Assembly (NCBI GenBank): GCA_965240325.2
Contig: OZ251232.1
Location: 620,001 to 684,000 of the forward strand
Direction of reading: 5' to 3'
Length of the DNA stretch: 64,000 bases
DNA from: Rebecca billardiae RCC1528
Lineage: Eukaryota; Protista; Haptophyta
Made by a program: the position numbers and the translations under genes. A model generated the notes under the pieces. It had not been told where the DNA came from. It did not search any database and saw only the letters and a program-made list of their open reading frames with translations. Of the stretch, positions 49,701 to 53,854 are shown one piece after another. Numbering within the stretch: position 1 is the stretch's first letter; the number at the start of each line of letters is the position of its first letter.

Positions 49701-49866
49701 CGTGCGCCTCGTCGCCGTGGCTTTCCGCGACCGCGTGCGCGGTCTCGCGAAGCTCGCGGGCAGGCTTGGCGAACAGAGTGGAGGTGGATGGCTGCCGGCC
49801 GAAGACGCTGTGCCCAGCCGCGGCTTGCAGCCCCACCAAGCAGGCCAGCACGACGACGGCGCGCAT
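46710..49866 (-). CDS. MLO-like multi-TM protein with a His-rich N-terminus and a C-terminal calmodulin-like EF-hand domain
   Basis: Exons 49866-49130, 48983-47526, 47373-47251, 47072-46919, 46757-46710. MLO-like motifs LSVIFEKSKHYL, LQALFGELTVLGFIALITF, LFEKVHFALFFV, FNFGAYLTQCSAGITAEIVEVHPVTW. EF loops DTTNDDHIDGVE, DVDNSGSVSLDE, DHDKSGVVSFKE and a degenerate fourth. Confidence 0.82.
49500..49620 (-). repeat. 12-bp coding tandem repeat encoding (GDAH/GDGH)n
   Basis: GCCGTGGGCGTC units on the + strand, about 10 copies. Confidence 0.93.
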
Positions 49867-49984
49867 GGCAGCACCGAGCAGCCGCAAGAGGACGCCGGCG
49901 ACGAAGGTGGTCTCGACTCCCCGACCCGCCGCCGCCCGCCGACGCGACGTTTCGCAAAAAGAAATGTGCGACGCTCGCCGCACG

Positions 49985-51667
49985 ATGGCGGCGCCTCTCG
50001 TGAAAGTCGAGCAGCAGCCAGCAAGACCTTCACCTGGTGTGCCTGTGCGCCCCGGCCCGTCGGGACCTCGGCCGAGCCTCTCTTCGGCCGGCGGCGCGAC
50101 GCGCACCCGCGGCATGTGCGCGCTCGCAACAGCCGGAGTGCACGCCATCCTCGCGAGCTGCGCGGCCCTCCAGCCGTCATGGCGTGGCTATACCATGCAG
50201 CAGCTGACACACTCGCCCGCGCCAGCCACGGCCGCGCCCGACACGAGCGACGTGACCACGCACCTCGTGCGCCAGCCGTTGGATCACTTTGACGGCAGCG
50301 AGCGCCGCACGTGGACGCAGCGCGTGCACGTGCGCGCGACCTTCTTCGAGCGAGACCGTCCTGGGCCGGTCTTCCTGTGCGTCGGTGGCGAGGGCCCACC
50401 GCTCGGGCCGGAGGCACTCGTCGCGTCCGTGCATTGCAACGACGCGGTCGAGCTGGCGCCTGTCGTGGGCGCTCTGCTCGTCGCGGCGGAGCATCGGTTC
50501 TACGGGCCCGACGCCGCGGTGCGGCCGCTGCCGTCCTTCGACACGCCCTCGCTGCGCTACCTCTCGTCCTCGCAGGCCGTGACCGACCTCGCCAACGTGC
50601 ACGCGTTCGTGAGCGCCAATCACTCACTCGACGCGCGCCGCCATCGCTGGGTGAGCTTCGGTGGCTCCTACCCGGGCCTGGTCGCGGGTTACGCGCGGCT
50701 GAAAATGCCGCACCTCTTCCACGCCGCCGTCTCCTCCTCGAGCCCGTGGCGCAGCGTCGTGGACATGCCGCAGTACAACGACGTGGTCGCCAGCGCGCTC
50801 GCAAACCCGCTGGTGGGCGGCTCGGCCGCGTGCGCGGAGGCGGTGCGCGCGGGGCACGAGGCGCTCGGCCACGCGCTCAAGCGCCCGGCCAGCCGGCGCG
50901 AGCTCGCGGGCATGTTTCGGTGGTGCAACGCCTCCTCGCTCGAGCGCGCGTCGACGGCGCGCGCGTGGGCCGGCGCCGGCGCCATCGCCGTGCCCGCGCA
51001 GTCGAACGACCCGGCGTGCTCCGCGCCCTGCTGCGACATCCGCGCCGTCTGCGCCGAGATCGGGCGCCCGGCGGACGGGCAGGCGGCGCTGCGCGCGCTC
51101 GCGCGCGTGAGCCGCGCGCAGCGCGGCTCGGGCGGCGGCGCCGAGGCGTGCATCGCCGACGATGAGTTCGACCCGGAGGCGGCGATGCGCGAGCTCGAGC
51201 GCCCCGCCAGCGCCGCGCGCGCCTGGCCGTACCAGACGTGCGCCGAGTACGGCTTCTTCCAGACGTGCGAGTGGGGCTCGCGCTGCCCGTTCGTGCGCGG
51301 CGCGCTGCCGCTCGCGGACTCGTTCGCGATGTGCGAGCGCGCGTTCGGCATCCCGCCCGAGCAGGTCCGGCGCCACGTCGCCGCGACCAACCGGCGGTAC
51401 GGCGGCGCCTCGCCGCGCGCGACGCGCGTGCTCTTCCTGAACGGCGACGTCGACCCGTGGAGCGCGCTCGGCGTGCTCGCGTCGCCGGACGGCAACCGCA
51501 GCGAGGTGACGATGGTGGTGCGCGGCGCGTCGCACCACGCGTGGACGCACCCGGCGGACACGGTCGTGCAGCCGGCCGTGCGCGATGCCAAGCGTGCAGT
51601 CTGGCGCCAGGTGCAGGCCTGGCTGCACGAGCCCGACTCGGACGCCGCCGAGCCGATCGAGACGTGA
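49985..51667 (+). CDS. Serine peptidase family S28 (PRCP/TSSP-like)
   Basis: QPLDHFD, FLCVGGEG, AEHRFYG, YLSSSQAVTDLA, nucleophile FGGSYPG, WPYQTCAEYGFFQT, FLNGDVDPW, GASHH. Start is 49985 or 50114. Confidence 0.92.
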   Translation: MAAPLVKVEQQPARPSPGVPVRPGPSGPRPSLSSAGGATRTRGMCALATAGVHAILASCAALQPSWRGYTMQQLTHSPAPATAAPDTSDVTTHLVRQPLDHFDGSERRTWTQRVHVRATFFERDRPGPVFLCVGGEGPPLGPEALVASVHCNDAVELAPVVGALLVAAEHRFYGPDAAVRPLPSFDTPSLRYLSSSQAVTDLANVHAFVSANHSLDARRHRWVSFGGSYPGLVAGYARLKMPHLFHAAVSSSSPWRSVVDMPQYNDVVASALANPLVGGSAACAEAVRAGHEALGHALKRPASRRELAGMFRWCNASSLERASTARAWAGAGAIAVPAQSNDPACSAPCCDIRAVCAEIGRPADGQAALRALARVSRAQRGSGGGAEACIADDEFDPEAAMRELERPASAARAWPYQTCAEYGFFQTCEWGSRCPFVRGALPLADSFAMCERAFGIPPEQVRRHVAATNRRYGGASPRATRVLFLNGDVDPWSALGVLASPDGNRSEVTMVVRGASHHAWTHPADTVVQPAVRDAKRAVWRQVQAWLHEPDSDAAEPIET

Positions 51668-52263: not shown

Positions 52264-52387
52264 GGCCGCTCACTCCGACTCCGCCTCCTTGCCGTGTGTG
52301 GGCGCGTTGAGCTGCATGGTGAGGTGGCCGCTCACTCCGACTCCGCCTCCTTGCCGTGTGTGGGCGCGTTGAGCTGCATGGTGAGGT
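52264..52387. repeat. Perfect 62-bp tandem duplication spanning the stop codon of the adjacent gene
   Basis: 52264-52325 is identical to 52326-52387 (GGCCGCTCACTCCGACTCC...CATGGTGAGGT). Confidence 0.95.
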
Positions 52388-53854
52388 CCTCGCGCAGCAG
52401 CGCGGCGTGGTCGTCCGCAGTGCACCCCAGCGCGGCGCACCACGCGGCGCACACCGCCTGCCGCTGCGTGAGCAGCTCGTCCACCGCGAGCGACGGGTCG
52501 AGCAGCTGCAGCTCGCCCGAGCTGCTCGTGCGCATCACCGGCGGCTGGCTCATCAGCTCGACCAGGTACCGAGCGCCCTCGAACCGCGTCTCAGGCCTGC
52601 GAGGGGGCGCGCGCGGCGCGCGGCGCGGGTGCGGCGGGTGAACGCGCTGAGAGCCGCGGGCGGCGCGGGGTCGGGTGCGAGGCGACGCGCGCCGGGCCCG
52701 CGCGCGCGCGGGCGCAGCGCGCACGTCTCGAGGAGCGGCCGCCATGCCTCGAAGCGCTCGCGCAGCCACGCCACGGTGGCGTGCTTGCTCGACGAGCCTG
52801 CGCCCTCGTCGCGCTCGAGCTCGCGCAGCGTCCTGAGCGTGGCCTCGCGCATGAGGGCGCGCTGGAGCATGTCGTAGTTGAGCGCGCGGAAGGGCGTGGA
52901 CGAGCCCGACCACGAGCGCGTCGCCTCGGCGAACGTCGCCGCCACCGGCAGCGGCACCTTGGGCCTGCCATCGCTGCTGAGCTCCTCGACCTCGAGCGCA
53001 GCGGCTGCCTCGGCCATGCCGTCGGCCGCCGAGGTGCCGCTCGCGCCGAAGCCCGGCGCGTCCGCAGGGTCGGCGCCCTGCCCCTCCCCCGGGCCGACGG
53101 CGCACAGCTCGGGCCCCGCCTCGCCCTCCGCCGCCCGCCGCTTGCTCTCCTCCTCGCTGCACAGCCACGCCTTGATCCGCGCGCCGTCGGCCGCAATGAT
53201 GGGCAGGTCGTGCAGCCACTCGTCAGAGAGCTGCGAGCGGATCTGCATGAGGCCGCGCGCGACGCGGCGCGGCTCGATCGTCTCAGTGTACTCCCTGTAC
53301 GCCGGCCCCTGGTTCTTGAGGTACGGGTTGTTGCGCCGGCTCGCCGACGCCGCCGCCCACGGCGCCTCTGCGCCGTCCGCCGTCGCCGTCGCCGACGCCT
53401 CGCCGTTCTTGCGCGGCAGCAGGTCCGGTGTGCCCACGCGGTACCGCACGGTGTACTCCTGCGGGCCGGAGGAGAGCATCGTGCGCAGGTAGTCCTGCCA
53501 GTCGCACCGCAGCCCGTCGAGCCCGCGGAATTTGATCGTACTCGTCATATCGCCCGTGCGCGTCGCGCGCAGGTGCTCGTGGCCCAAAAAGCTCTCGAGC
53601 CAGCGCCCCATGAGCTCGTTCTTGAACTCCATGGCGTACGAGAGCTGCGCCTGGATGGAGCTCTGCAGCAGGAGCTTGCGCGGCACCTCGTTGCCGTCGC
53701 GCTCGCGCGAGGCAGCCAGGGGCCGCGCGCGCGCCGGCGCCGCGCGCCCCGCGACGCGCGACGCGCCAACGGCACCACGCGCCAGGACGTGCGGCGTGGC
53801 GGGAGCCGCGAGGAGGGCGGCGAGTATTGCGTACTTAGATGCTGACCGCCACAT
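52332..53854 (-). CDS. Putative plastid-targeted protein with two internally repeated helical domains resembling RbcX
   Basis: Exons 53854-52725 and 52596-52332. Signal peptide (MWRSASKYAILAALLAAPAT) plus Arg/Ala-rich transit-like segment. Both halves share the pattern WL..F...YL..M/L...P...L..R...W. The gene is well supported; the RbcX label is inference. Confidence 0.7.

Follow-up and report, generated by a model that had tools for sequence, protein, structure and literature searches.

A probable tandem RbcX-fold protein of plastid type in a haptophyte alga and its red-lineage family: a candidate chaperone for form ID Rubisco

To our knowledge, the only role known for the RbcX fold is the clamping of assembly intermediates of RbcL, the Rubisco large subunit. 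The groove residues Tyr17, Tyr20 and Ile50 reportedly hold the C-terminal Phe residues of RbcL, as Saschenbrecker et al. are said to have described in 2007, and an arginine of the R70 type contacts the neighbouring RbcL; names of groove mutants appear in the titles of the PDB entries 2PEJ and 2PEK. Cyanobacterial RbcX (PF02341; 3Q20, 2PEO, 2PEM, 2PY8 and 3RG6) is a homodimer (~15 kDa), encoded in an rbcL-rbcX-rbcS operon, with a four-helix fold and a long fourth helix. The green-lineage proteins, namely Arabidopsis RbcX1 and RbcX2 (4GR2 and 4GR6) and Chlamydomonas RbcX-IIa (5BS1 and 5BS2), share this fold and are nuclear-encoded, plastid-imported, single-domain homodimers that are recognized by Pfam and serve form IB Rubisco. 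Organisms with red-type Rubisco are held to lack RbcX (PMC9833100, PMC6508576), in agreement with what an earlier note on the DNA analysed here had stated, and our literature search for RbcX-like proteins in red-lineage algae returned green-lineage cases only, such as Ulva. Here, we analysed a window of 64,000 nucleotides (nt) from the haptophyte Rebecca billardiae RCC1528 (contig OZ251232.1, positions 620,001 to 684,000), in which a two-exon minus-strand gene, occupying positions 52332-53854 exactly from ATG to stop, encodes a product of 464 amino acids (aa). This protein is very probably a tandem homologue of RbcX, with a single chain that carries two diverged domains of the RbcX fold, and is a member of an unannotated red-lineage family having the same two-domain architecture.

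The two halves of the protein were recognized by family profiles, which matched the spliced product at residues 55-227 with the N-terminal (N) domain profile (E value 9.8e-59) and at residues 312-455 with the C-terminal (C) domain profile (E value 1.3e-42). When broad alignments of 94 N domains (alignment A5) and 63 C domains (alignment A6) were compared by hhalign, the two domains aligned with a probability of 97.5% and an E value of 6e-12 over 112 columns covering all helices. This whole-domain alignment, far above chance, bears out the suggestion in the earlier note that the protein consists of two similar halves. Using haptophyte-only profiles, the last helix alone was matched (39.8%), and in many relatives each domain profile cross-matches the last helix of the other domain. 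Judged from these alignments, the tandem layout arose long ago by internal duplication. In both halves, helices 3 and 4 are separated by a beta hairpin, which cyanobacterial RbcX lacks, and the N half further adds an insert of about 58 residues, comprising beta strands, a disordered loop and two short helices. This insert is absent from RbcX and from the second domain, appears as a gap in the N-versus-C and N-versus-RbcX alignments, and is far shorter in the diatom and Porphyridium relatives. It carries an NPYL motif, of which N176 is the only invariant column in the alignment of 94 N domains, with P and L being at least 90% conserved. The linker joining the two domains varies in both length and sequence across the family, and the equivalent stretch in the structural model of the homologue P0002 has a predicted local distance difference test score (pLDDT) of 42-66.

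Both halves retrieved RbcX, and only RbcX, when the broad profiles were searched against 177,635 PDB sequences, as would be expected from the earlier description of the two halves as RbcX-like. With the N-domain profile, the top match was RbcX 3Q20 (E value 0.0025), followed by two further RbcX entries; with the C-domain profile, the top eight were all RbcX, including 2PEO (0.0065), 2PY8 (0.018), 7XSD (0.026), Synechococcus ORF134 entries and AtRbcX2. Broad profiles were required for this, since haptophyte-only profiles found no RbcX among the PDB sequences. For a direct comparison, a reference set of 101 cyanobacterial rbcX open reading frames (ORFs) was aligned, the loci of which had been found by scanning a genome collection with the motif YLTYQAVR. 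Against this set, the C domain aligned by hhalign with a probability of 96.2% (E value 2.5e-9, 90 columns, score 58.3). The complete N domain, in which the alignment breaks at the insert, reached 45.6% (E value 2.1e-4, 53 columns, score 31.1), and after removal of the insert columns it reached 94.5% (E value 7.4e-8, 82 columns, score 48.1). In the controls, the highest score among 30 column-shuffled RbcX alignments was 17.1, and reversal of the alignment gave scores of 10-17. Features in register with RbcX are T-x-(Q/E)-A (helix 1), WL..F (helix 2) and the R70-type arginine of helix 4; R-x-x-(I/L)A-x-E also lies in register.

Structure comparison gave the same answer. The N domain, modelled by AlphaFold2 (AF2) from the window's own sequence with alignment A5, had a pLDDT of 88, and an exhaustive VIA-align search of this model against 48,161 PDB representatives yielded Z scores of at least 5 for five chains only, all of which are RbcX: 3q20_B (9.6), 4gr6_B (AtRbcX2, 9.4), 2peo_A (Anabaena, 8.9), 4gr2_B (AtRbcX1, 8.7) and 5bs2_A (Chlamydomonas RbcX-IIa, 8.1). 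Between 91 and 96 residues of these chains were aligned, at a root-mean-square deviation (rmsd) of 3.2-4.0 Å, and the next chain scored 4.9; the similarity to the green-lineage proteins is thus as high as that to the cyanobacterial ones. For the full length, the homologue P0002, which is 51% identical, was modelled using 60 sequences, and the model reached a pLDDT of 81.4 and a predicted template-modelling score (pTM) of 0.79, with about 118 of its 445 residues below a pLDDT of 70. In the VIA search with this model, RbcX occupied the top 16 rows for the C domain (residues 310-445), with Z scores of 6.0-7.3, 102-111 aligned residues and rmsd values of 3.4-4.4 Å. RbcX chains also led the Foldseek list for this domain, with probabilities of 0.87-0.99. 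The Foldseek E values are weak (0.26-10) even though RbcX dominates the lists, and the clear separation comes from VIA-align. The structure searches found RbcX, and RbcX only, for both halves, the C half being represented by P0002, in line with the fold proposed in the earlier note; as in RbcX, each half has four helices, of which the fourth is long. Shape searches of the ESM Atlas returned the two-domain cluster of diatoms, another of 165 aa with the label Rhodophyta, and clusters from chlorophytes bearing Pfam RbcX, the latter being the only Pfam-bearing Atlas matches above a TM score of 0.5.

To compare the two halves with RbcX at the residue level, positions were mapped through the profile-versus-PDB and hhalign alignments. 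RbcX Y17 and Y20 correspond to L61 and Q64 in the N half and to A333 and R336 in the C half; across the family, Q64 and R336 vary little or not at all. The equivalents of the peripheral polar residues Q29 and E32 of RbcX and of its I50 in the N half are Y73, E76 and L95, respectively, none of the three being kept in the C half. RbcX R70, likewise peripheral, has an arginine counterpart in both halves, R206 and R422; the latter is at least 90% conserved among the family C domains, and an R70-type arginine is common in the N half.

The distribution of the family was then examined. By a word-indexed search, 32 relatives were identified in Emiliania, Chrysotila, Chrysochromulina, Prymnesium, and MMETSP or metagenome data, all of them named "hypothetical" and none with a Pfam domain, the closest full-length relative being an MMETSP transcript. 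Searching the N-domain profile against 1.84 billion cluster representatives yielded 309 proteins with E values of at most 1e-3, most of which have the layout of N domain, linker and C domain by local domain mapping. Members of the family include the haptophyte proteins EMIHUDRAFT_438618 of Emiliania and AB1Y20_000753 of Prymnesium, CTAYLR_001392 of the pelagophyte Chrysophaeum taylorii, FVE85_1592 of the red alga Porphyridium purpureum, and diatom proteins of Thalassiosira, Skeletonema (QTG54_008466), Stephanodiscus, Fistulifera, Nitzschia and Pseudo-nitzschia. Members of the tandem family were without exception named "hypothetical", and no study of them was found in the literature searched. 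Based on these sequence searches, a tandem RbcX-like family, previously unannotated, is conserved among red algae and algae whose plastids are of red origin.

A quick maximum-likelihood tree was built from 111 two-domain members, rooted at the midpoint only, leaving out rows with more than 75% identity to a kept row as well as P0001, P0021 and P0025, which have wrong C termini. The tree splits into two deep clades, with a support of 99 in the Shimodaira-Hasegawa-like approximate likelihood ratio test (SH-aLRT). One clade has long N domains and comprises the haptophytes, including the window protein and P0002, together with a pelagophyte group; the other has compact N domains of 119-155 aa without the long insert and comprises the diatoms and Porphyridium. 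Inside the haptophyte clade, the window protein pairs with the Pavlovales transcript P0002 (SH-aLRT 99 and 98).

Aside from the tandem family, the ESM Atlas contains a mostly diatom cluster of 168 aa, which is named "RbcX protein domain-containing protein" and carries Pfam RbcX in 53% of its members. With this cluster, automatic annotation already contradicts the view that diatoms have no RbcX, and a single-domain RbcX may also exist in diatoms, contrary to the reviews.

The presequences of the family point to the plastid. Diatom relatives have presequences of the complex-plastid type, such as VSA|FAPP in Skeletonema, LG|FVPT in Thalassiosira and HA|FVPS in Fistulifera, with plastid signals of the ASAFAP type in many of them, and haptophyte relatives show A|W or G|F. 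In a crude count made without a null model, an N-terminal hydrophobic stretch was present in 110 of 154 full-length-looking members, and [AGSC][FW] followed just after it in 79 of the 110. The window protein itself begins with the hydrophobic stretch YAILAALLAA (mean Kyte-Doolittle hydropathy 2.36), followed by an Ala/Arg-rich, acid-free stretch, and has no aromatic +1 residue. Hence, of the bipartite-looking presequence described in the earlier note, the hydrophobic part followed by the Ala/Arg-rich part stands, but the aromatic +1 residue that most relatives possess is missing. The assignment of the protein as plastid-type agrees with the classical complex-plastid presequences of its relatives, for example Skeletonema VSAFAPP, and the sequence features suggest a nuclear-coded protein directed to the plastid. 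With such a gene, the present case resembles the nuclear-encoded, plastid-imported green-lineage RbcX, and differs from cyanobacterial RbcX, which is encoded in the Rubisco operon. It differs from both in that two diverged copies joined by a linker occupy one chain, and from the green-lineage proteins also in being a red-lineage fusion in an organism whose Rubisco is form ID.

A possible mode of action can be drawn from these features. The two domains would pack through their long fourth helices, thereby producing an intramolecular mimic of the RbcX homodimer. We infer this packing because the full-length model of P0002 reached its pTM of 0.79 despite long disordered parts, which suggests a fixed mutual arrangement of the halves, at least in the model, and because bundle matches span both halves: VIA matches of unrelated helical bundles to the P0002 model extended over helix 4 of the N half and the whole C half. 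Packed in this way, the protein would have a single asymmetric groove at its centre, the walls of which, around Q64 and R336, would be formed by the first helix of each half, and two non-equivalent corner surfaces retaining the R70-type arginine (R206 and R422), to which the N half would contribute the beta-rich insert with its family-invariant NPYL motif. The most likely function of such a protein would be that of a chaperone for red-type (form ID) Rubisco, clamping its large-subunit intermediates in either an assembly or a stabilising role, with a recognition chemistry that would differ from the Tyr17/Tyr20 pocket of green-type RbcX. A function in Rubisco assembly is suggested by the combination of the one role known for this fold, the probable compartment and the taxonomic range, the named family members being algae with form ID Rubisco. 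For the complete chain of argument, that is, a tandem RbcX-fold plastid protein with form ID Rubisco as its client, our confidence is tentative and falls a little short of even.

Several observations weigh against this Rubisco-chaperone reading. With neither Y17 nor Y20 retained in either half, the protein lacks the canonical aromatic pocket that receives the RbcL C-terminal tail, and Q29 is likewise not kept. Pfam is nearly silent on the family: scanning of the window protein in pieces gave no RbcX match at E values up to 10, Pfam RbcX (PF02341) was found in none of 17 N domains and none of 16 C domains, and in the set of 63 C domains two matched it, the best at an E value of 0.077 and thus short of the gathering threshold. 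The fold match of the C domain was obtained with P0002 instead of the window's own sequence. Within the family, at least two deep clades of paralogues exist, and some members may therefore serve other clients. Finally, as the work of Joshi et al. (2015) is relayed in PMC9833100 and PMC6508576, a hairpin of the red-type small subunit reportedly makes RbcX dispensable for a form IC enzyme.

Nearly as likely as the Rubisco-chaperone reading is that the protein is a true plastid tandem RbcX-fold protein that has been repurposed, either for a non-Rubisco client, such as another stromal complex, or as a scaffold or regulator, for instance in pyrenoid organisation. The loss of the groove tyrosines from both halves fits this alternative, as does the position of the most conserved feature, NPYL, in an insert outside the RbcX core, and the several deep paralogues suggest diversified roles. 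Red-type RbcS is moreover reported to replace RbcX function (PMC9833100), and the 168-aa diatom cluster with Pfam RbcX might be the canonical chaperone in those algae. On the other side, the RbcX fold is not known to serve any other function, the R70-type arginine varies hardly at all in the C half and is often present in the N half, and the named relatives found are algae with red-type plastids.

It is very improbable that the resemblance to RbcX is convergent, with generic four-helix bundles of unrelated origin making up the two halves. This explanation could draw on the failure to obtain a significant Pfam match, on an identity to RbcX of only about 15-24%, and on the caveat that helical bundles can reach middling Z scores by chance in VIA. 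However, RbcX came first among all PDB sequences with two independent profiles, hhalign gave 94-96% with clean shuffled and reversed controls, and RbcX alone exceeded a Z score of 5 among the PDB representatives, being aligned over about 90% of its length, with the WL..F and R-x-x-(I/L)A-x-E motifs in register.

Returning to the tandem RbcX-fold family as a possible partner of Rubisco, its interest lies in the enzyme concerned. Form ID Rubisco has the best CO2 specificity known, and it has not yet been assembled heterologously, with unknown chaperones thought to be required (PMC9833100, PMC6508576). We consider it unlikely that the family supplies the lineage-specific assembly chaperone that is missing for the red-type enzyme. 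If it did, co-expression, perhaps together with paralogues, would let the Rubisco of diatoms, haptophytes or red algae assemble in Escherichia coli or plant chloroplasts, and an RbcX-fold family spread across red algae, haptophytes, pelagophytes and diatoms provides a concrete candidate for such a co-expression test. In addition, provided that the two halves pack as proposed, the protein would illustrate a route from a homodimeric chaperone to a single-chain asymmetric pseudo-dimer. The novelty is tempered by the candidate status of the function and by the 168-aa Atlas cluster, which suggests that some diatom proteins are already labelled Pfam RbcX.

All of the above is based on a spliced gene model, the features of which are collected in Table 1. 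Translated, exon 1 coincides residue for residue with positions 1-376 of the database model P0001. This unspliced model (433 aa) was rejected, as it runs on across the intron, ending in an Arg/Ala-rich tail, and leaves the C domain incomplete, its C-domain profile match covering residues 312-382 only. An in-frame extension upstream was also considered and discarded, because no ATG precedes position 53854. After removal of the intron, the exon 2 product can be aligned to the C-terminal ends of P0002, P0004, P0007 and P0015, and all peptide stretches quoted in the earlier note fall on the minus strand of the spliced gene, at residues 60-89, 119-127 and 193-213 for its first repeat and at residues 330-347, 361-368, 384-392 and 409-429 for its second. 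Because the spliced protein aligns without gaps to P0002, the complete ORF of a transcript from a related species, and to over 50 relatives, and because the full C domain is restored, the 464-aa form is preferred over the database model, the junction being placed by homology alone. The related Pavlovales-like model P0003 (331 aa) has a similar tail at the same position as the read-through tail of P0001, and the two tails together suggest a conserved intron missed by gene callers in very GC-rich genomes. The gene ends in a perfect tandem duplication of 62 nt, which takes in the final 17 codons together with the stop codon and the beginning of the 3′ untranslated region, and which is either a very recent event or an assembly artefact; since the stop codon lies within the first copy in gene orientation, the protein is unaffected. 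Scarcely credible, finally, is a wrong gene model or a pseudogene, to which the Arg/Ala-rich tail of P0001 and the duplication at the stop might point, because the spliced frame is open and aligns without gaps to the transcript ORF and the other relatives, splicing restores the C domain, and the duplicated copy comes after the stop codon in gene orientation.

Table 1. Features of the tandem RbcX-like gene and its product, in positions of the 64,000-nt window
Feature	Positions	Strand	Extent or content	Basis
Exon 1	52725..53854	-	ATG at 53854; codons 1-376 and the first two bases of codon 377	
Intron	52597..52724	-	128 nt, GT...AG, very GC-rich	removal gives gap-free alignment to P0002
Exon 2	52332..52596	-	last base of codon 377 to stop TGA at 52334-52332	
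Presequence	53693..53854	-	residues 1-54; signal-like hydrophobic stretch, then Ala/Arg-rich transit-like stretch	
RbcX-like domain 1	53174..53692	-	residues 55-227	AF2 model, PDB structure search, profiles
Domain 1 insert between helices 3 and 4	53282..53455	-	residues 134-191	predicted secondary structure
NPYL motif within the insert	53318..53329	-	residues 176-179	N-domain alignment
Low-complexity linker, acidic, Gly/Ala-rich	52922..53173	-	residues 228-311	family alignment, P0002 model
RbcX-like domain 2, first part	52725..52921	-	residues 312-377; helices 1-2	C-profile match
RbcX-like domain 2, second part	52362..52596	-	residues 377-455; helix 3, beta hairpin, long helix 4	
Perfect 62-nt tandem duplication	52264..52387	.	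copies 52264-52325 and 52326-52387	

The G+C content of the window is 72.8%, and that of the Pavlovales haptophyte Diacronema lutheri is 73.25% (PMC8379373). Between about 55000 and 56500, the G+C fraction of the window falls to about 0.55 from 0.72-0.78, and ORF translations near 55.3-55.5 kb contain long IYIYIY runs, implying a TA-rich dinucleotide microsatellite. The upstream neighbour on the opposite strand (49766-51667, plus strand) is a serine carboxypeptidase S28 gene, with a full-length match to Pfam PF05577 (E value 3e-78).

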